From the sequence record NC_070957.1: a DNA stretch of 64,000 nucleotides; one strand, written 5' to 3'. Numbering within the stretch: the first letter of the stretch is position 1; each line of letters starts with the position of its first letter. The translations under genes were made by a program, and so were the position numbers. The notes beneath the pieces are model-generated. The model saw only the letters and a program-made list of their open reading frames with translations, made no database searches and was not told where the DNA came from. Below, one piece after another: positions 8,756 to 41,712 of this stretch.

Positions 8756-8831
8756 TGGCAGGCAAGCAAGGATTCGAACCTTGGACATCTGGTTTTGGAG
8801 ACCAGCGCTCTACCAACTGAGCTACTCACCT
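8756..8831 (-). tRNA. trnW: tRNA-Trp(CCA)
   Basis: Cloverleaf, loop CTCCAAA, GGTTCGAATCC, encoded CCA. Confidence 0.95.
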
Positions 8832-9018
8832 GTAATACGAATTCACATTACTACACACTCGCCGTTCTTCCTAGTTTCCGTTCCGAACGTTCCACGGTTC
8901 ACCGTCACCATATACTTTATCCATTCGGACGCCATCTGTGGCTATCAAGTACTTAGGTCCATATTGGTTATGTCTGTTGACACCCGTGTGTAAACCAGAT
9001 TAATCTGGGGTGAAAATA

Positions 9019-9095
9019 TGGCAGGGATAACGGGGCTCGAACCCGCGACCTCCGGCGTGACAGGCCGGCACTCTAACCATCTGAGCTACATCCCT
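9019..9095 (-). tRNA. trnD: tRNA-Asp(GTC)
   Basis: Cloverleaf, loop CTGTCAC, encoded CCA. Confidence 0.95.
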
Positions 9096-9101
9096 AAAAT
9101 G

Positions 9102-9200
9102 TTTACCCATCACATGTTCTTACATCGTAGGCGGCTGTGGATCTCAGGTATCTACCGAAGTAGCCTGACCAGATAACCCCGAAACCACATGACAGGTAAA
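9102..9200 (-). ncRNA. Candidate small structured RNA between tRNA-Asn and tRNA-Asp
   Basis: ~15-bp terminal stem with several G-U pairs; internal CAGG-CTAC-TTCG-GTAG-ATA-CCTG hairpin. Confidence 0.5.
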
Positions 9201-9201
9201 T

Positions 9202-9277
9202 TGGCGGTTCCTGCTGGACTTGAACCAGCGACATATGCATTAACAGTGCACCGTTCTACCTACTGAACTAAGGAACC
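9202..9277 (-). tRNA. trnN: tRNA-Asn(GTT)
   Basis: Cloverleaf, loop CTGTTAA, encoded CCA. Confidence 0.95.
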
Positions 9278-29374: not shown

Positions 29375-31438
29375 ATGTCCAACGATAATCCATTTCTCTC
29401 TGAGAAATATAGTTCCGACAGGAACATTATTAAGCACAACCTCGATCAGCAGGCGTTGGTTATTTCGAGGATGCGAAACGAACCTTATCAAGAGGTCCGT
29501 AACAATTTAGTCAAGTTCTATAAAGCGCACAAAGATGAATTCAAGTCCAAGAAAGCTAAGGTCTTGGTAAAGAACAAACATGGTGACCGAGAGCTCCAGA
29601 TACGTTCCATCTTCAGTGTGTTTAAAGAAGTACAAGCGAACAACTATCACTTTAGCCCGTCAATGATTGGTTATACAAACTCTGATGAAGAAGAGTGTGT
29701 TAACTCAATCGGTACCCGTCAGTTCATTGACAACCGTAAGTTCTATAAGGACAAACGGCAAGAGGTACCCAAAGGTGGTGATATGTGGACGAAGTACAAC
29801 GAACTTCAGAACGCATTCAAAATCTTTAACAACGCCCAATCAGGCGCGATGTCCTCCGAAGGTACACCGATCAACAATAAGACTGGCCACACTTCATTGA
29901 CGTCAAGCACTCGTTGTTTAACGTCGACAGCAAACCTGATTAACGAACAGTTCATAGCTGGTAACCGTTTCTATAACACTCCAGAAAACACAATGCAGGC
30001 GATCATTGCTCGTCTGACAGTGAGTAATCTGAATGATATCGAAATGGTAATCAACAAGTTTGGGTTGAAAATACCGACTGTTGAAGATGTGATGAAAATC
30101 GTGGAACGATGCTCTAGACGGTATTGGTCGTCAGCACTCGTTATGCGGTACATCAAGGTATTCCTGGACACGCTAAGTGGTCTTGAGTTAGCTGCCATAG
30201 CGTACACACTTGACTTGGTAACACTGTACGAGTTGAACGTTCCGGTTATTACGAAACTGTTTGACGACTACGTGCACATCCCTGATTACGTTGAAGGTAA
30301 AGAGGGGATTAAACCGAACACTGGTGACCGTTATGTGTTGTGTATTTCCAAGCTTCCTCCTAAATCAGAGAAAGCCTGGGTTCCGCAGCTCAACGAATAC
30401 CACATGTCAGTTGAACAGAAGTATGCTGATCTGTTCCGTGTGTTCTTCAAATCCAAAATACCACCATCTGGTCTGTTCGATGTAACCAGCGCTATCCGTG
30501 ACGTGGTACTCACTTCCGATACTGACTCGTCCATCTATACAGTGGACGATATGATCGCGAACTACACCACTGAGCATGAAACTGTGGTACGACTGAATGG
30601 CGTGCTCACGTACTTCATTCGGATGATCTCTGTGGACCAACACGCTCAGCTTTCAGCCAACATGAACGTGTCACAGAAGAACATCAACCTGCTCACCATG
30701 AAGAACGAATACTTCTTCGGTGCTTATGTCACCACATCCATGTCTAAACACTATTACGCGACTCAGCGTATGGTTGAAGGTGTGACCAACCCTGAACCCG
30801 ATATCGAGATCAAGGGTGTTCACCTGAAGTCTTCTAAGATCTCTCCGAAGATTAAAGAAGTAGCTGTGAAGATGATGGAAGAAGCATTGTTCGCTCTGGA
30901 AGAATCCAGAACACTTGACGCAGCTCAGACATTGGCGGATATCGCCAACCTGGAGCGTGAAGTTATCGGTGAACTCCAGAAGGGTGAGTATAGCTGGTTG
31001 TCAAAAGAAACCATCAAAGTTAAGGCGGTGTACGGTAACCCTGATAGCCAGATCTATCTTTACCACGATATGTGGGAATCGGTGTTCTCCGATAAGTATG
31101 GTCCTGCTCCAGAACTTCCATATACTGTTGTTAAAATGTCCGTAGATCTTGGAAACAAAACCAAGCTCGAAAGCTACCTTAACAGCATCAAAGATTCCGA
31201 AATCCGTGAGCGCCTCAGATCTTTCCTTGAGAACAAAGGAAAGAAAGACATGTCCAACATGTACGCTCCTCTAGAGCGTCTTCAGAACCTCCAGGATATT
31301 CCCGAGGAGATGAAACAGGCTATGGATATGCGGACTGTGATAAAGCAAAACTTCAAATGTATTTACGAGGTATTGCACTCCACAGGGATCTATGTGATGA
31401 ACGATAGTATCTCTCGACTCATCTCAGATGAACATTAA
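29375..31438 (+). CDS. Family B DNA polymerase, catalytic subunit (phiKZ gp50-like)
   Basis: KIFNNAQSG, SDTDSSIY catalytic motif, MKNEY, KHY, EIKGVHLK. Confidence 0.88.
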   Translation: MSNDNPFLSEKYSSDRNIIKHNLDQQALVISRMRNEPYQEVRNNLVKFYKAHKDEFKSKKAKVLVKNKHGDRELQIRSIFSVFKEVQANNYHFSPSMIGYTNSDEEECVNSIGTRQFIDNRKFYKDKRQEVPKGGDMWTKYNELQNAFKIFNNAQSGAMSSEGTPINNKTGHTSLTSSTRCLTSTANLINEQFIAGNRFYNTPENTMQAIIARLTVSNLNDIEMVINKFGLKIPTVEDVMKIVERCSRRYWSSALVMRYIKVFLDTLSGLELAAIAYTLDLVTLYELNVPVITKLFDDYVHIPDYVEGKEGIKPNTGDRYVLCISKLPPKSEKAWVPQLNEYHMSVEQKYADLFRVFFKSKIPPSGLFDVTSAIRDVVLTSDTDSSIYTVDDMIANYTTEHETVVRLNGVLTYFIRMISVDQHAQLSANMNVSQKNINLLTMKNEYFFGAYVTTSMSKHYYATQRMVEGVTNPEPDIEIKGVHLKSSKISPKIKEVAVKMMEEALFALEESRTLDAAQTLADIANLEREVIGELQKGEYSWLSKETIKVKAVYGNPDSQIYLYHDMWESVFSDKYGPAPELPYTVVKMSVDLGNKTKLESYLNSIKDSEIRERLRSFLENKGKKDMSNMYAPLERLQNLQDIPEEMKQAMDMRTVIKQNFKCIYEVLHSTGIYVMNDSISRLISDEH

Positions 31439-32831: not shown

Positions 32832-34820
32832 ATGTCCGATAAACCTTCCAACAAAGGTTTCAGTCTCCCTGGACAAGACAGTCCTAGTGAAACTGGTGCC
32901 CAACACCAACCTGCCGTATCTGAAGTTCAAACCAAACCCGTAACCACCCTCAAAGAAGGAAAAGTGAATATGTCTATCAACTCCCTGGCCTCCCTGATCG
33001 GTATGTCCTCCCTGGTTTCCCAAGCTGGCACCATCCCGGAAGTGAAAGCAATCGCCAAAGGTATCGACGACGCCGTGGCTGATCTGAAGCGTCAGATCGC
33101 TACCCCTGAGCAAATGGCAACCCTGCCGGCCGACGTGACCCACCTGACCTCCGACATCACCCAGCACCTGCCGGGTATCGTACTGCCGCTGCGCCTGGGC
33201 CAGACCGTGTACGTGATGCCGATCCTGTTCTGGAAAGCCGGTGTGACCGACGCTACCGACACCATCATGGTGAACCAAGGTGAAGCACCGCGTGGTTTCG
33301 CCAAGACCGCGTCCAGCTTCATGCACATCGACATGATCAACAAGATCCGCGACAGCTTCGCCTTCTACGGCGAGAAGAAAGCTGACGAAGTCATGGCCAC
33401 CAGCCCCTGCGTGATCAACCTGGAGCACTGGATCAAGGAAGGCAAGAACACCGAAGAAATGGTGCGCGAAGTCGTCAACGTGATCCTGACCGAATGGCAC
33501 GCTGGTCTGATGACCCTGGGCGTGATGCTGACCACCAAGGCCGGCGGTACCATCCCCAGCCCGTTCAAGAACAGCAAGCTGTTCGGTGATCAGGACACTG
33601 CCATCGCTCGTGTAGAAGCTGCCTACAACCCGGTCATCCGTGGTGTCACCACCGGTTACAACCTGGCTGTCAACATCTCTACCGCGCCGAAGAACGCTCA
33701 CATGGTCCACACCAACAACATGAACGCCAAGTCGGTCTGCAAGACCTTCCTGAACGTCCAGTTGGACACCATGCAGCCGCAGCAGTACGGTCATCTCCGT
33801 CAGCGTGCCGGTATGGGTCAGAACGTTGGTCCGATCGTTCCGGTCATCTCCATCGGTCAGACCATCCCGGGTGAAACCCTGAACCACAACCAGTCCATCC
33901 TGTCGGCCGCCCTGGGTCTGTTCGCAGCCCTGACCGCCAACAACCTGCGTTTCTACTCCGAAGCAATCCGTGCCAAGGAAGTGGGTCACCGCGGTAACCT
34001 GGCTGTGTTCAACAACTACCTGTCCGCCATCACCCAGGGTCAGTACACCTCCGATCAGCTGCTGTCCGCCAAGAACATCAGCAACGTCGCCGTGGTGAAC
34101 GACTGGATCCAACGCTTCGTGAACAGCCGCGCTGTCTACGTAGTCGACGTACCGACCTTCGGTCCGGATTCCAGCATCTCTGACTTCTGGATGGGCATGG
34201 CCAAGTTCGGTCCGGGCTCCCTGTACCAGAACACTCTGATCGCCATCTTCGATGCACTGACCAACAAGAAGTTCAGCGAGAAGGCAGAAGAGAACGCCAA
34301 GATGGCTCAGCGTGATCCGTCCAAGCACTGGACCAAGGCCGACAAGGTTCTGTCCCTGACCCAGATGATCGTCCCGCGCGGCCGTGCTCAGGGCAAGGAT
34401 GGCAAGTGGTTCTGCCTGAGCGAAATCGATGGCATGTTCCTGCGTCAGACCGAGTACCTGGGTACCAACGAAGTCGAGATCGCCGAGTACCAAGCTCTGG
34501 TACAAGGTTCCGTTCCGGGCGTTGATCGTCGCACCCGCGAGTTCAACCTGATCAACAAGCTCCAGCACATGTTCCAGGGCAACGTGATCATCGATGGTTT
34601 CGATGCTCGCCTGATCTGGTCCTCTGCGCTGTTCAACACCCTGGCCGAAGCAATGGTTTCCACCGGTACTCTGACCGTGAACTCCAGCGCTCACCAGTCC
34701 AACTGGACCATGGAATACTCCAACGAGCTGTTCGACCACTTCATGACTGCCGGTATCGTTCCGCAAGTCGGTGGTGGCGCGAGCGCTGCTCAGTTCGGCA
34801 TGTACTCCAACCTGGTCTAA
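32832..34820 (+). CDS. chmA: Chimallin, major phage-nucleus shell protein
   Basis: 662 aa, disordered N-terminus, extreme codon optimisation, own promoter, located between DNA polymerase block and nvRNAP beta' gene; motif order resembles recalled ChmA. Confidence 0.8.
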   Translation: MSDKPSNKGFSLPGQDSPSETGAQHQPAVSEVQTKPVTTLKEGKVNMSINSLASLIGMSSLVSQAGTIPEVKAIAKGIDDAVADLKRQIATPEQMATLPADVTHLTSDITQHLPGIVLPLRLGQTVYVMPILFWKAGVTDATDTIMVNQGEAPRGFAKTASSFMHIDMINKIRDSFAFYGEKKADEVMATSPCVINLEHWIKEGKNTEEMVREVVNVILTEWHAGLMTLGVMLTTKAGGTIPSPFKNSKLFGDQDTAIARVEAAYNPVIRGVTTGYNLAVNISTAPKNAHMVHTNNMNAKSVCKTFLNVQLDTMQPQQYGHLRQRAGMGQNVGPIVPVISIGQTIPGETLNHNQSILSAALGLFAALTANNLRFYSEAIRAKEVGHRGNLAVFNNYLSAITQGQYTSDQLLSAKNISNVAVVNDWIQRFVNSRAVYVVDVPTFGPDSSISDFWMGMAKFGPGSLYQNTLIAIFDALTNKKFSEKAEENAKMAQRDPSKHWTKADKVLSLTQMIVPRGRAQGKDGKWFCLSEIDGMFLRQTEYLGTNEVEIAEYQALVQGSVPGVDRRTREFNLINKLQHMFQGNVIIDGFDARLIWSSALFNTLAEAMVSTGTLTVNSSAHQSNWTMEYSNELFDHFMTAGIVPQVGGGASAAQFGMYSNLV

Positions 34821-35572: not shown

Positions 35573-36988
35573 GTGAGTACCATTATCCGAGTTCTTAAGG
35601 ATTACTCCGAAGAACAATTACTTCCTCAAAATCTCTTCAACCAGATTCTCGAGGGCACGGGGTATATTCCGGAAATGGATGATGAGCGGTTCTATACTGC
35701 AATCTATCCCCATTTCGAAAACTACGACCAACGACACGACAACTGCACAACACTCCCGATCTACCTGAATGACCACGACTTTCGAATCGAAGAAGATCGT
35801 GAACGTATCGTGCAAGCCCTTCGTACCGAGTATGAAGGTAACACATTCGATACGGTTGCAGTTTGTTCACCCAGCTGCGGTAAGTATCGCGGCAACATGT
35901 ATCTCAACTCTGGGATTGTCTGTGACGTTTGTGGCGAGACACCAAGTCGTCCACTGAGCGAACAGATCGAGACCAAGGTTTGGTTGAGAACTCCACCCAG
36001 GGTTTCTGGTTTCCTGTCACCGGCTATATATGAGGTATTCCTCAGTAAGCTCAAAACCAAAACACCGAAAATCAATTTCGTTCAGTATTGGATGGATGAA
36101 GGTTATCGGAGAGACAAACGGTTCCGTGATCCAGTAGGTGAAACACCGGCGTACAAAATGGCTCAGAAGCTCAATGCTTTTAGTAGTGCCATTGGTATCG
36201 ACTTCGGGTATAATAATTTTATCGATAACATCGATACGATTATCAATGCAGCAGTCACCCAAGACTTTATGGGGATCCTCGATCTCAATGAAGTACAACG
36301 TGACCATTGCACCCGGTTCTGGGCCAAGTATAAGGAGTTTGCAGTTAGCAACTTCCTTCCGCTTCCGAACAAGATTGCCACGGTGATCGAATCTGACCAA
36401 CGTGACCGTTACGTCAACAAGGAAAAGACTGATCTGGAAAAGATCTTCTTTACCATAGCAGATATGTATCACGAAATGGACCATCGTTCTGTTCAGAACG
36501 AAGTTCTGTTCGGTAAGAACTATTTCGAGATGCAGGCAGTGATGCTCAAAGTGATGAAAGAGATTCTCTTTAAGAAGAAGGGGATGTTCCGATATCACGC
36601 CGGGGCTGGTAAACTGCCATTTACTGGGCGCTCCATCATTACCGGTGAATCAGGCGTTTGTCGTTCTGATACCGTGGTGGTTCCCTGGCTTTATGGCATC
36701 ACCTGTTTGAACCATCATCTGACCAACTGGTTGTACCGTCGCGGCTATACACCCAAAGCGGTTAAGCGGATCATCCGTGAATCTGCCAACTTCCGTCACC
36801 CGGTGATAGAAGAGTTCTTTGACTGGGTGGAGAACAACCGCTATGCTGTAGCAACAGTAGGTCGTAACCCATCGATTCAGTTCTTGTCATCAAGAACTTT
36901 CTTCATCAAGTTCAACCGGGATATTGAGGATAAGTCTATTCGTATCCCAATCACCTGCGTGAAAGAATTTGGTGCTGACTTTGACGGT
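35573..36988 (+). CDS. Non-virion RNAP beta'-like subunit (phiKZ gp55-like), exon 1
   Basis: Zn-finger CGKY..CDVC, GRSII, RNPSI, ends GADFDG. Confidence 0.9.
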
Positions 36989-37298
36989 AAACTAAATTGC
37001 TGTCATTAAACCCTTTCAATTGCTGGAAACCCCTTAGAGCTCGATCAACTACAACGCAACCAGAAATGGTAAACGTGAATGTTTGAAAATGATCGAGATT
37101 GGGCAATCAGCAGCGAAGACTCTAAGTACATCTGTGATAGATGGATATGAGTAACGTTCAACGACTACGTTCCCAGAAGCCTGGGATGATGAGGGCACCC
37201 TAAAGGGTGAAGATATAGTCTCTACCGGTATGAAAGTATCGGAAAGATCATTTAGCGAATGATCATAAAGCCGTCGAGATGACGTTACAATGTAATAG
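36989..37298 (+). mobile_element. Group I intron, 310 nt, no ORF
   Basis: P AATTGCTGGAAA 37018, Q AATCAGCAG 37105, R GTTCAACGACTA 37156, S AAGATATAGTCT 37210; P1 GACGGT/GCTGTC with U-G at 5' splice site; terminal G. Confidence 0.92.
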
Positions 37299-37484
37299 GA
37301 TCAAATGTACGTATGGTTCATTCCGGACCTGTTCGGTAAAGTTGCTGGCTACGCCAACTTTGGTCATCAGCAAATGCTCGACCCGAACAAACCGTTCCGT
37401 ACCAGTCGGTTCGCAACTCGCGCCAAGAACGTTCTTCTCAACCTCAACTCGCAATTATTGGACGAGCCAATAGCGGAGGATTAA
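37299..37484 (+). CDS. Non-virion RNAP beta'-like subunit, exon 2 (not in ORF track)
   Basis: 61 codons DQMYVWFIPD...; splicing restores ADFDGDQM; spliced protein 533 aa. Confidence 0.88.
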   Translation, partial: DQMYVWFIPDLFGKVAGYANFGHQQMLDPNKPFRTSRFATRAKNVLLNLNSQLLDEPIAED

Positions 37485-37489
37485 TAATA

Positions 37490-38155
37490 GTGATCAATGT
37501 AACAAGCGCGTTCTCAATGGGTATCGGTGGTAGCATGTCTAAAGCCGCTGCTGATGTTTATAACCAAACTCTGACTTCGATATATGACGGGATGTCGAAC
37601 CTGGGTGGTTGGTTGGGTGGCGCTGTCCAATCGGTTGTCCAAAGCCATGAAAACTTCATGAACTCTAACATGTGGGAGTTCAGTAAGCGGATTGGTAAAG
37701 ACGGTCACTATGTTGGACGTTTCGATGTAGGTTACCTGTCGGAAGTGGGTTATCAACAACAAGCTGTCGGGTTGATGCGGAACTACATCATGGCTAACCC
37801 CAAGATGATGGAACTGTACGAAGCCGATCGCATATCTGGTTATGATGGTGAAATCTCTGATCTCTGTAGTGGGATCGGTCGTGACAACTATTTCTATAAC
37901 CGTGCTGTTGATGGCCTGATGCGCATCGAAGATGATGAAGCGGTGCGTACTCACTACGCCACATCTCTCGACAAGTATACTCACTTGTCAGCGATGGAAC
38001 GTGTGGATATCAAACGTACCTGGGCGGCTAGCAATATCCATATTGCTAAGAACCTCTTTGACCCAAGTAGTATTTCTGGCGGGAAGATTCTTTCTGTAGA
38101 GGAAGTTGAAGCCATCCAGAAACAAATGGAAGAAGAAGCGGGCGACGCCCAGTAA
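37490..38155 (+). CDS. Conserved phiKZ-like hypothetical protein
   Basis: Long ORF, QQAVGLMRNYIMANP motif; core-block position. Confidence 0.7.
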   Translation: MINVTSAFSMGIGGSMSKAAADVYNQTLTSIYDGMSNLGGWLGGAVQSVVQSHENFMNSNMWEFSKRIGKDGHYVGRFDVGYLSEVGYQQQAVGLMRNYIMANPKMMELYEADRISGYDGEISDLCSGIGRDNYFYNRAVDGLMRIEDDEAVRTHYATSLDKYTHLSAMERVDIKRTWAASNIHIAKNLFDPSSISGGKILSVEEVEAIQKQMEEEAGDAQ

Positions 38156-38225
38156 TAGGTGGGAGCTAACCGGGAGACCGGTTAGCTCTTCCTTTATATA
38201 GTTATTTTTTTTTTAGGAGTGTTAT

Positions 38226-38558
38226 ATGACCCCCGAAATTATCCATGAAGACGGTGTTGTTACCGCATTCAAAGTGAATGACCATCTCTATCGCGTTCAC
38301 CCCAAGAACCTTGAAGTGGGGACTTATCAAGGCGTGGTCAAGTTCCAAAAAGGAGACCCGGCAATAGAAGAGAATGGTTTGACCTTGGAAGCACTACTCG
38401 CGATCTGTATCAGTCGGCTGGATAGTTGTAACCAAGGTAACTTCAAATGTCTCCATAACGATCTCGCAATCGAACATATGAAAGCTGCCAAGGTAGCTCT
38501 CGAAGAAAGACAGTCCGATCGCAAGAACCGTTTTGTACTTGCTACCGATAAGGTGTAA
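38226..38558 (+). CDS. tad1: Tad1-like immune-signal sponge
   Basis: FQKG..NG...E.LL....RL...Q..F.C..N..AI..M..A...L..R..DR..R.V..T matches recalled Tad1 consensus. Confidence 0.7.
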   Translation: MTPEIIHEDGVVTAFKVNDHLYRVHPKNLEVGTYQGVVKFQKGDPAIEENGLTLEALLAICISRLDSCNQGNFKCLHNDLAIEHMKAAKVALEERQSDRKNRFVLATDKV

Positions 38559-38559
38559 T

Positions 38560-39045
38560 ATGAAATTTGGTTATTCAAAGTTGATGTTGGATCTTGGATC
38601 AGCATCCAGAATCCGCAAAGCGGCCATGAAGGTCATCGAAGGGACCGAGAAAGAAAAGGACCAAGCAGTCCTCGACGTAATCAACATCCCTGCAACTGAA
38701 CTCCACGCCACACTGATGTATGACAAACGTAATCCGGATATCATTCCGGATACCAACCGTGCATCATATAAGGCAAAGGTAACCGGTGTTGAACGTCTGG
38801 GTACGCCAGGTGGTAACTACTACGCCCTGGTACTGCTTTGCGAGTCAGAAGGGATTACAAAACGTCACGAAGAACTTCTCGAACAAGGTTTCAAGCATAG
38901 CTGGCCTGACCTGAAGATTCACGTTTCACTCAACTATGGTGACCAGGTTACCGTTGCGTACCCCATTATCAAGGAAGCCTTCGAGAAGGGTTATCTCCCT
39001 ACCGAAGTGACCTTGGGTGCCGAGTGCTGGAACGAGTGTCGTTAA
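38560..39045 (+). CDS. acb1: Acb1-like 2H phosphoesterase (anti-CBASS nuclease)
   Basis: Two 2H motifs LHATLMY and IHVSLNY; LVL...S..I..RH....G.KH.W segment parallels T4 Acb1 (gp57B). Confidence 0.78.
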   Translation: MKFGYSKLMLDLGSASRIRKAAMKVIEGTEKEKDQAVLDVINIPATELHATLMYDKRNPDIIPDTNRASYKAKVTGVERLGTPGGNYYALVLLCESEGITKRHEELLEQGFKHSWPDLKIHVSLNYGDQVTVAYPIIKEAFEKGYLPTEVTLGAECWNECR

Positions 39046-39117
39046 GATGGAAGAAGTTTCAGGCATATATTACCTAAGTGATAACATAACCATGTTTAAC
39101 AATTAGAGGTAACTACC

Positions 39118-39267
39118 ATGTTTGAAGCAATGTCCAACTCCCAAGCTTTCGGTTTCGCTTTCTTCGGTGCTATCGGCGTAATCGCTGTTATCGCTATCGG
39201 TGCCAATGAATACTTCAAAGCCAAGAAAGCTCTGAAGCGTCCGATGGCTACTCGCAACAAGCGTTGA
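39118..39267 (+). CDS. 49-aa single-pass membrane microprotein (not in ORF track)
   Basis: GAGGT SD; TATATTAC promoter at 39066; terminator 39273-39295. Confidence 0.7.
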   Translation: MFEAMSNSQAFGFAFFGAIGVIAVIAIGANEYFKAKKALKRPMATRNKR

Positions 39268-39332
39268 TATCAACCCTCTCCCAATGGGAGAGGGTAGTTT
39301 CAATTACATTTATTTTTTTTGTCGAGGTTCAT

Positions 39333-40548: not shown

Positions 40549-41712
40549 GTGATCTCTAGGAGATTAATAGTGAATCCGTCACCAATTTATAAGGCGCTGT
40601 GGTGTTCAGACCAACACACCTTACACCCGCATACCCACACCAGACATATCTTAGATAACTTGAGTGTCTTTTATTATAAAGACAGCAACTTAGATGAGAT
40701 ATCTCACATCGTCTGGGGTGGGGACTTCTTCCATGACCTGTGCGAGTCCAACGATCCCAACATGATCCTGGTTCAGCGATGGGTCAAAAACTTTTTGGCA
40801 ATCTGTCATGAGAAACGTATTCATGTCCGTATTCTGGAGGGGACCTCTTCTCACGACTGGGGAATGCCGGAAACCCTAGACATATTGAAACCGAAAGACT
40901 CCCCGTATATAAAGTACGTCAAGGAGCTTTCCATCGAGTTCATTCCTGAACTTGGTATCAACGTTCTTTACGTCCCGGATAACTTCGGGAAGATAGCATC
41001 TGAGACTATCTACGACAGAACAATCGAGTTGATGGCTAACAAGGGTTTAACCCAAGTTGACTTTATCTACCTCCACGGTGGTTTCAAGTTCCAACTTCCG
41101 CCTATCGCCGATAAACACGGAACATTGTACGATGAGGACAAATGGAGTAAGTTGGCTAGTAAAGCAATCTTCTCCGGCCACATCCACAAACCAGGTAGAA
41201 AACACAACATCTACTGTTCCGGTTCTTTCGATCGTATCGCATTTGGTGAAATGCACCCGAAAGGTGCGTACCGTTTCGAGTTCGGTAAAGATCACTTCAA
41301 AGCCGAGTTCTATGAAAACACCAGGGCTCAGATCTATGACAAAATCATGATCACTCCGGAGATGGAATCACTCGAGCTTTCCATGAAACTCGAGAAATAC
41401 ATTGACGAAAACAATCCGCCAGCCAGGACTCATATCCGAGTGTGTGGTGGTGATTCCAGTGTAGTGATTCCAGTGGTAGCCAGTTTCAGGGAAAAGTTTC
41501 CAAAGTACATTTTCGATTACGAGAATGCTAAGGAAGATAATGTCGAGATCGATGACACTCTGTACACTCCCGAAGCTTATAAAGCTATCACCTTAACAGC
41601 AGACAACCTGGAAGATAACCTTCTTAACTTCATGGCACCAACACTCCATGAGAATGATTGGGTTGACCAGGAACTGTTGAAAGAACTTCTACGAGAGGTG
41701 ATCAATGAATAA
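40549..41712 (+). CDS. SbcD/Mre11-like metallophosphoesterase nuclease
   Basis: SDQH, GGDFFH, LEGTSSHD, YLHG, SGHIH, GSFDR motifs. Confidence 0.85.
   Translation: MISRRLIVNPSPIYKALWCSDQHTLHPHTHTRHILDNLSVFYYKDSNLDEISHIVWGGDFFHDLCESNDPNMILVQRWVKNFLAICHEKRIHVRILEGTSSHDWGMPETLDILKPKDSPYIKYVKELSIEFIPELGINVLYVPDNFGKIASETIYDRTIELMANKGLTQVDFIYLHGGFKFQLPPIADKHGTLYDEDKWSKLASKAIFSGHIHKPGRKHNIYCSGSFDRIAFGEMHPKGAYRFEFGKDHFKAEFYENTRAQIYDKIMITPEMESLELSMKLEKYIDENNPPARTHIRVCGGDSSVVIPVVASFREKFPKYIFDYENAKEDNVEIDDTLYTPEAYKAITLTADNLEDNLLNFMAPTLHENDWVDQELLKELLREVINE

Follow-up and report, generated by a model that had tools for sequence, protein, structure and literature searches.

The window analysed here comprises the first 64,000 bases (1-64000) of the 262,372 bp genome of Aeromonas phage D3, genus Ludhianavirus (MN102098.2 / NC_070957.1). 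It contains two adjacent genes, gp225 (gene A) and gp224 (gene B), which are annotated in the D3 record as hypothetical proteins. Sequence profiles and a predicted fold place the product of gene A in the Tad1 family, whereas gene B is assigned to the Acb1-family 2H phosphoesterases, with an intact catalytic tetrad and a predicted activity. A preliminary description of this DNA had reported the two genes at a distance of 1 nt, and a single base (T at 38559) indeed separates them. It had also placed them in the core replication block of a nucleus-forming phage, in agreement with the gene for the nuclear shell protein chimallin that is found 3.4 kb upstream (Table 1).

By itself, gene A returned no match in Pfam or NCBIfam (gene B likewise gave nothing in NCBIfam). 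Its PHROGs group, phrog_2428, has no annotated function, and the orthologue of phage D6 was the sole match in a word-index protein search. Comparing gene A to the Tad1 chains of the PDB with phmmer gives E-values from 2.5e-4 (CbTad1, from a Clostridium botulinum prophage) to 6e-3 over CbTad1, CmTad1 and phiKZ gp184, covering residues 36-108. An exhaustive search of 1.8 billion representatives yielded 636 relatives, and a profile, A1, was built from 80 of them. It matches CbTad1 with an E-value of 1.2e-29 at full length, CmTad1 with 8.6e-27 and phiKZ gp184 with 1.8e-23, and ten of the 80 homologues match the Pfam family PF24729 (Acb2_Tad1_hairpin). Raw PDB searches rank designed beta-propellers ('Cake' and 'Scone', E-values down to 2e-10) above the Tad1 chains; they were rejected because their scores add up as many as nine repeats of ~6 bits (i-Evalue ~100 each), none of which passes singly, and no propeller is returned by Foldseek.

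The predicted structure leads to the same family. An AlphaFold2 model based on alignment A1 (predicted local distance difference test, pLDDT, 93.3; predicted template-modelling score 0.81) shows the Tad1 sheet (strands 4-8, 12-18, 21-26 and 36-40) with two long helices (54-68 and 76-101). When compared with the PDB using Foldseek, ranks 1 to 20 are all Tad1 (E 8e-7, probability 1.00, template-modelling (TM) score 0.72-0.81), and the first other structure appears at rank 21 with an E-value of ~1. Among viral models the best matches are G9I9V2 (108 residues, nameless in the tables), the orthologue of Klebsiella phage N1M2 and proteins named 'Acb2/Tad1 hairpin domain'. The preliminary description had called gene A Tad1-like and proposed profile hidden Markov model (HMM) and Foldseek comparisons as checks; both match Tad1, and the model agrees with that assignment.

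Relative to the solved proteins CbTad1 (7UAV/7UAW/8KBE-H) and CmTad1 (8KBB-D), gene A is homologous by profile and has the same fold (TM ~0.8), but it is only ~22-27% identical, shorter (110 versus 124-132 amino acids, aa) and without the GPGGA loop of the N-terminal sheet. It shares with CbTad1 a C-terminal tail with a Leu at the L119 position. Gene A also differs in coming from a jumbo phage that is lytic and infects a Gram-negative host, and in its position next to Acb1. Gp184 of phiKZ (8Y6V chain I) belongs to the same family and both phages encode chimallin. The phiKZ protein is a capsid-anchored, injected Tad1 (PMC12676376, PMC13282480) of 230 aa, whereas D3 gp225, the domain without additions, has to be synthesised once infection has begun. 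AntiDefenseFinder detects Tad1 alone in phiKZ (PMC11724313), and phiKZ is not among the best 60 of the 268 records that match the Acb1-like protein of D3 in tblastn.

Some annotations of this family deserve a remark. The CbTad1 entry 7UAV was deposited as 'ABC transporter ATPase' and Tad1 homologues bear the same name in the GenBank records of N1M2, SXP01 and OLIVR5/6, which suggests that this label was passed on by similarity. In N1M2 (L016:1063-1488), Yubaba (L018:1033-1488) and one contig (L007:535-984) the Tad1-like protein carries an extra N-terminal segment of ~40 aa, with a weak phrog_17259 match in Yubaba; the Aeromonas forms, including that of D3, are without it. In OBP and SXP01 the same segment can be read upstream of the starts given in the annotation (L002:3653, L017:1165), which are probably set too far downstream.

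To judge which signals gene A might bind, the site residues defined for CbTad1 (bioRxiv 10.1101/2023.11.15.567273) were mapped onto it by pairwise alignment. Three of the four residues of the pocket for glycocyclic ADP-ribose (gcADPR) and cyclic dinucleotides (F82, N92, R109 and R113) are kept: N92, R109 and R113 correspond to N78, R95 and R99 in D3. Conservation is high among the 80 homologues (N78 in 77/80, R95 in 80/80, R99 in 73/80) and complete in the 12 copies linked to Acb1; the FQxG loop and E55 are also conserved across homologues that are ~35-50% identical. From these residues, gcADPR and perhaps dinucleotides are the predicted ligands of gene A.

For gene B the family is apparent from the single sequence. 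It matches the Pfam Acb1 model PF23474 with 55.3 bits (gathering score 27; E 8.1e-15), which settles in favour of Acb1 the HMM comparison that had been proposed for this gene; its orthologues on contigs carry PF23474 too. At E <= 0.01 the PDB searches, run with the single sequence and with a nine-member profile, return solely 7T26 (Acb1 of Erwinia phage FBB1) and 9Q2G (Acb1-like 2H PDE-9), in alignments that end at residue 133. The two 2H histidine motifs noticed earlier, H49-A-T51 and H121-V-S123, correspond in the alignment to the pair of HxT motifs in FBB1 Acb1, and H49, T51, H121 and S123 are invariant in nine homologues. Also invariant in this clade are an N-terminal Gly-Tyr/Phe and the Glu of a C-terminal E-x-W. 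With the Acb1 proteins of T4 (gene 57B) and FBB1 (7T26/7T27), gene B thus has the Pfam domain and the HxT...HxT/S tetrad in common, as well as an aromatic residue six positions before the second His (W115). Based on sequence, G4-Y5, W115 and E155-x-W157 are candidate stacking or lid residues; the N-terminal Gly-Tyr and C-terminal Glu-x-Trp are similar to residues described for stacking and for the lid in FBB1 Acb1 (PMC9117128). The exact mapping of FBB1 Y12, W74, F107, E141 and W147 onto gene B failed, as the numbering is inconsistent and the alignment stops short of the C-terminus; the lid and the adenine-reading residue likewise found no counterpart in the mapping. The direct match to FBB1 Acb1 is weak (E 1.7e-4, residues 39-128 only), and in comparison to most members of the clade gene B has an 11-residue insert ahead of the first His motif.

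The open reading frame (ORF) list offers an alternative TTG start at 38533 for gene B. It was rejected, since the ATG fits the N-termini of all homologues (MxxxGY...) as well as the GenBank annotation; a Shine-Dalgarno-like AAGGTG lies within the 3' end of gene A. Phages D6, D9 and LAh10 are 98-99% identical to D3 across the region, and in this group gene B shows synonymous changes only (9 synonymous codon changes and no non-synonymous one relative to LAh10): the gene is under purifying selection. Homologues of Acb1 are widely annotated as 'RNA ligase' or 'structural protein'. One of them, in the giant Yersinia phage fHe-Yen9-04 (L006, 51630-58043), is found amid nicotinamide phosphoribosyltransferase, Sir2 and Nudix genes and with none of the genes of the chimallin block; given these NAD-metabolism neighbours the locus may be another anti-defence neighbourhood.

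To survey the linkage of the two genes, both proteins were compared by tblastn with 50,697 phage records (for the Acb1-like query, the best 60 of 268 records were read), and metagenomic homologues were looked up as well. A Tad1-like gene followed by an Acb1-like gene is found in Aeromonas phages of several genera (CF8, AerS_266, AhC3_1, ZPAH34, PS1, PS2, ACP1, AVP1 and pAEv1810), in Serratia phages Yubaba and Sureiya, Klebsiella phage N1M2, Shewanella phage SXP01 and Pseudomonas phage OBP, and in three environmental contigs. The position is constant as well: the PHROG 3254 gene lies on one side and a small ORF on the other, within the block of chimallin, RNA polymerase and SbcD genes. In 12 loci (phages and contigs) with proteins that are ~35-50% identical, the distance from stop to start ranges from -1 to 9 nt. 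Phage AerS_266 (OR496884), of the genus Chaoshanvirus, has the same two genes, order and block with a 1-nt overlap, although its proteins are just 45-46% identical to those of D3. Its record labels the pair 'Anti-Thoeris, immune evasion protein' and 'Anti-CBASS, nuclease'; the paper on this phage is silent on these labels.

Across the 12 loci the pairwise identities of the Tad1-like and Acb1-like proteins are correlated (r 0.83), and those of each protein correlate even better with the neighbouring core protein (r ~0.91). Mean identities of the two are 46% and 49%, against 63% for the core protein. Since the identities track the core protein at a lower mean, the pair seems to be inherited vertically with the block while changing faster. 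As independent proof of coupling, adjacency is weakened by this and by the collinearity of the whole block. The Tad1 homologue P0007, from outside the D3 clade, has no adjoining Acb1.

The block itself is of the nucleus-forming type, and a related contig that also carries chimallin (family PF25677) shows the same context. Table 1 lists its members along with the pair and its borders.

Table 1. Positions of the gene pair, its borders and the surrounding block in the window
Feature	Position	Strand	Remarks
Gene A, gp225 (110 aa)	38226-38558	+	Short stand-alone Tad1-family protein (profile and predicted fold); ATG 38226, TAA 38556-38558
Gene B, gp224 (161 aa)	38560-39045	+	Acb1-family 2H phosphoesterase (activity predicted); ATG 38560, TAA 39043-39045
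Small ORF, gp223 (49 aa)	39118-39267	+	Single hydrophobic helix plus basic tail; lies behind the Acb1-like gene
5' border hairpin, GC-rich	38157-38193	+	After core gene 37490-38155; minimum free energy -26.7 kcal/mol, z -4.5, 0/200 shuffles equally stable
CTTTAT...TTATTTTTTTT element	38191-38214	+	Between hairpin and ribosome-binding site
3' border hairpin	39273-39295	+	Minimum free energy -19.5 kcal/mol, z -3.9
TTTATTTTTTTT element	39308-39320	+	After 3' hairpin, ahead of next gene (39333)
DNA polymerase	29375-31438	+	Member of block
Nuclear shell protein, chimallin	32832-34820	+	Member of block; 3.4 kb upstream of gene pair
Non-virion RNA polymerase beta'	35573-37484	+	Member of block
Conserved protein, PHROG 3254	37490-38155	+	Core gene upstream of pair
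Two conserved proteins	between 49-aa ORF and SbcD-like gene	+	Members of block
SbcD-like nuclease	40570-41712	+	Member of block

The borders suggest that the pair is part of a somewhat larger unit. A hairpin at the position of the 5' hairpin, yet with another sequence, is present in CF8, AerS_266, OBP, N1M2, Yubaba, SXP01, contig L013, pEt-SU and Survivor, and hairpins of -20 to -28 kcal/mol occur past the small ORF in CF8, PS1, OBP, N1M2, Yubaba, contigs L012 and L013, pEt-SU and Survivor. No hairpin is found between the genes of the unit (the spacer between gene B and gp223 is unstructured, z 0.05). Gp223 has a weak phrog_28777 match, and an ORF of 44-63 aa occupies its position in most relatives examined, those without Tad1 included. 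Because hairpins bracket the region, none lies inside it and the layout is conserved in relatives, we read 38226-39267 as one unit of three genes.

After the 5' hairpin and ahead of gene A stands CTTTATATAGTTATTTTTTTTTT. The core TTATTTTTTTT has four exact copies in the window against 0.07 expected, at 38202, 39310, 48105 and 56231, all on the plus strand and each 10-20 nt past a GC-rich hairpin; the copies at 38191 and 48094 have CTTTATATA-N-TTATTTTTTTT in common. Similar T-rich elements precede the cassette in relatives. The element upstream of gene A could be a terminator tail and/or a phage promoter, and hairpin plus TTATTTTTTTT could constitute a terminator/promoter module of D3. A scan for sigma-70 promoters stays at chance level (6 found versus 5.1 expected), which is not relevant here as the phage has its own RNA polymerases.

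Two other observations concern the window at large. The gene for the non-virion RNA polymerase beta' subunit of D3 contains an ORF-free insertion of ~310 nt (~36988-37297), in which Rfam recognizes a group I intron (RF00028 at 36979-37242, 88.4 bits against a gathering score of 50) and which splits the catalytic motif between ADFDG and DQM. Due to this insert the gene is annotated as split (35573-37009 and 37305-37484), whereas it is unsplit in LAh10 according to direct alignment and annotated with unsplit 1602-bp genes in D6 and D9. A cluster of three tRNA genes is located at 8759-9277 on the minus strand (RF00005, 66-72 bits).

Inside the phage nucleus DNA is out of reach of restriction enzymes and of DNA-targeting CRISPR, but cell-death defences triggered by small-molecule signals still act. 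We consider it probable, at roughly 0.7, that the three-gene unit serves against such abortive-infection signals, with sponge and nuclease acting in parallel. The three genes would then be expressed as a small transcription unit: the Tad1-like gene, the Acb1-like one that begins 1 nt downstream and is probably coupled to it in translation, and the ORF for a small membrane protein. The Tad1-like protein is predicted to be an oligomeric sponge in the host cytoplasm, the pocket of which (N78/R95/R99) would hold the Thoeris signal gcADPR and possibly some cyclic dinucleotides. The Acb1-like enzyme would hydrolyse 3'-5'-linked, adenosine-containing cyclic di- and trinucleotides, that is, the signals of CBASS, an antiphage signalling system based on cyclic oligonucleotides, and possibly the cyclic triadenylate (cA3) of type III CRISPR, by a metal-free mechanism using the H49/T51/H121/S123 tetrad. 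Working on largely different signals, the two may weaken those abortive-infection defences against which the protein shell enclosing the phage DNA gives no protection. The data themselves show the family of each protein, the fold of gene A, the catalytic motifs of gene B, the tight linkage, the conserved borders and the purifying selection on gene B; ligands, substrates, timing and benefit to the phage are what we infer. Published ranges count in favour of such a division, as they are complementary: Acb1 cleaves cyclic di- and trinucleotides on the 3' side of adenosine (PMC9117128), and Tad1 binds gcADPR as well as 3'2'-cyclic GMP-AMP, the latter of which is not cleaved by Acb1 (bioRxiv 10.1101/2023.11.15.567273).

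Several observations weigh against this reading. The single-sequence AlphaFold2 model of gene B is poor (pLDDT 42.6). Most points, however, concern gene A. The fourth pocket residue, F82 of CbTad1, is C68 in D3; this column holds F in 55, L in 13 and C in 5 of the 80 homologues and varies between C, L, F, Q and V across the clade linked to Acb1. In CbTad1, binding was weaker when F82 was mutated together with N92. Both residues of the trinucleotide site, R90 and T97, are replaced by L76 and E83. R and T are each present in 11/80 relatives and in neither the 12 Acb1-linked copies (0/12) nor the long gp184-like forms, whereas in print the site is substituted in just ~6% of Tad1 orthologues (10.1101/2023.11.15.567273). 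Gene A also changes faster in amino acids than its neighbours (3 non-synonymous and 4 synonymous differences from D6; 2-3 amino-acid changes per 2-4 synonymous ones among D3, D6, D9 and LAh10), and it is decayed or lost in some relatives, so its function may be dispensable or shifted.

What the preliminary description assumed about the ligands of Tad1 is therefore retained in part. The pocket is present for three quarters, but with one pocket residue and the trinucleotide site missing the range of gene A may be narrower than was assumed: the replacement of R90/T97 argues against binding of cA3 in the known mode, which leaves family membership unaffected. One might think that the Acb1 neighbour specifically compensates for the lost site. 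We rejected this as specific evidence, because the long gp184-like forms and most of the 80 nearest homologues are without R/T regardless of their neighbours.

The same observations can be explained by a Tad1 fold of which the ligand is shifted or lost (another signal derived from ADP-ribose, an oligoadenylate, or a protein that is decaying), so that the cassette would in effect be Acb1 with a variable passenger. The variable F82 position, the absent trinucleotide site, the relatively high non-synonymous share and the decay or loss in sister lineages would all fit, as does the varying ligand range of Tad1 homologues in published screens (10.1101/2023.11.15.567273; 10.1101/2025.08.24.671296). 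Nonetheless, N78, R95, R99, the FQxG loop and E55 are kept over considerable divergence, and the confident model of gene A superposes on ligand-bound CbTad1. We regard this explanation as unlikely.

Relatives in which the arrangement differs show that the two genes can be separated. In Edwardsiella phage pEt-SU and Pantoea phage Survivor the block is the same but holds an Acb1-like gene and no Tad1. In Erwinia phage AH04 (gene 67, L004:3225-3950) and Kosakonia phage Kc263 (L009:2713-3450) the Acb1-like ORF has an N-terminal extension of ~90 residues, for which hhalign shows homology with Tad1 (probability 82.7%, E 9.6e-6). This fused domain keeps the motifs of the sheet and the first helix (YKVY and NGLTEE.LL.IL.DRF); because the FQxG loop and the equivalents of R95/R99 are lost, it would not be a working Tad1 pocket. 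At least ten metagenomic clusters (P0151-P0160, 224-242 aa, on contigs up to 271 kb) contain the same fusion with an N-terminal domain that is 63-82% identical, which indicates that it is stable and selected rather than a sequencing error. Acb1 alone in some relatives and a decayed, fused Tad1 domain in others thus exist next to the intact pair.

These fusions bear on the idea that the two proteins cooperate physically, in a complex or by hand-off, for instance with the Tad1-like oligomer scaffolding or concentrating the nuclease, or holding a ligand that cannot be cut. Gene fusion is a classical hint of functional linkage, and the gap never leaves the narrow range of -1 to 9 nt. Against this, the fused domain is precisely the one that has lost loop and arginines, and Acb1 is solitary in pEt-SU, Survivor and T4, where it is active by itself (PMC9117128). 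Physical cooperation is accordingly judged quite improbable. Of the 'coupled' module proposed earlier, tight linkage, probable co-transcription or co-translation and co-inheritance in 12 relatives stand; a complex or hand-off would go beyond these, and relatives with Acb1 alone speak against it. Still more speculative, and at least as doubtful, is that one lineage of nucleus-forming phages possesses an obligate functional module, made up of Tad1-like protein, Acb1-like protein and small membrane ORF, in which sponge and nuclease cooperate physically, and that in AH04 and Kc263 the sponge domain became a ligand-blind domain of the nuclease (e.g. for oligomerisation or localisation). If true, this would be a transition from sponge to enzyme subunit, which is undescribed for anti-signalling proteins.

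Finally, gene B might be a general RNA 2',3'-cyclic phosphodiesterase or RNA-repair enzyme (LigT-like) instead of an immune-signal nuclease, as the names RNA ligase or cyclic phosphodiesterase used by PHROG 755 and in several GenBank records, a weak 2_5_RNA_ligase2 match and the varied substrates of viral 2H enzymes (10.1101/2025.08.21.671373) could suggest, but this is very unlikely given that the ligase model scores 17.1 bits, under its gathering score, against 55.3 for Acb1, that the solved relatives found are exclusively Acb1-type enzymes, that a Tad1 gene adjoins, and that 'RNA ligase' appears to be a generic name for the 2H superfamily from automated annotation.

In comparison to known systems the D3 pair is partly familiar. 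The Tad1 and Acb1 families have both been characterised (PMC9117128; 10.1101/2023.11.15.567273). T4 (with Acb1, Acb2 and the Sequestin sponge) is likewise a phage in which nucleotide signals face both a nuclease and a sponge, and anti-defence islands have been described as genes less than 1 kb apart (PMC11724313; 10.1101/2025.07.12.664507), a distance within which the D3 genes and those of the 12 loci amply fall. The anti-defence genes of T4 are co-localised in islands, with Acb1 beside ipI (PMC9117128, PMC11724313), whereas the D3 pair is fixed, nearly overlapping, vertically inherited and situated inside a conserved core block. A 2025 survey found both classes to be common in nucleus-forming phages and interpreted them as preventing 'self-sacrifice' of the host, so that the need of such phages for anti-signalling genes is already in print (PMC12625630); according to a 2026 review, no anti-defence protein other than the phiKZ Tad1 has been described in jumbo phages (PMC13282480). 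We found no paper on a fixed Tad1-Acb1 pair in the chimallin block, on its borders or on the fusion.

Summarizing, the reading given in the preliminary description is supported for family, fold, motifs, adjacency and context, with parallel sequestration and cleavage of different signals as the mechanism that these would suggest. As both families and the general idea have been published, the advance is incremental. It shows a whole lineage of nucleus-forming phages, on Aeromonas, Serratia, Klebsiella, Shewanella and Pseudomonas, with a stand-alone Tad1 beside Acb1 in the chimallin/RNA polymerase block. Compact and testable, the pair lends itself to asking which ligands a Tad1 without the trinucleotide site can bind, whether sponge and nuclease divide the work, and how these phages escape from Thoeris, CBASS and perhaps cA3-based type III CRISPR.

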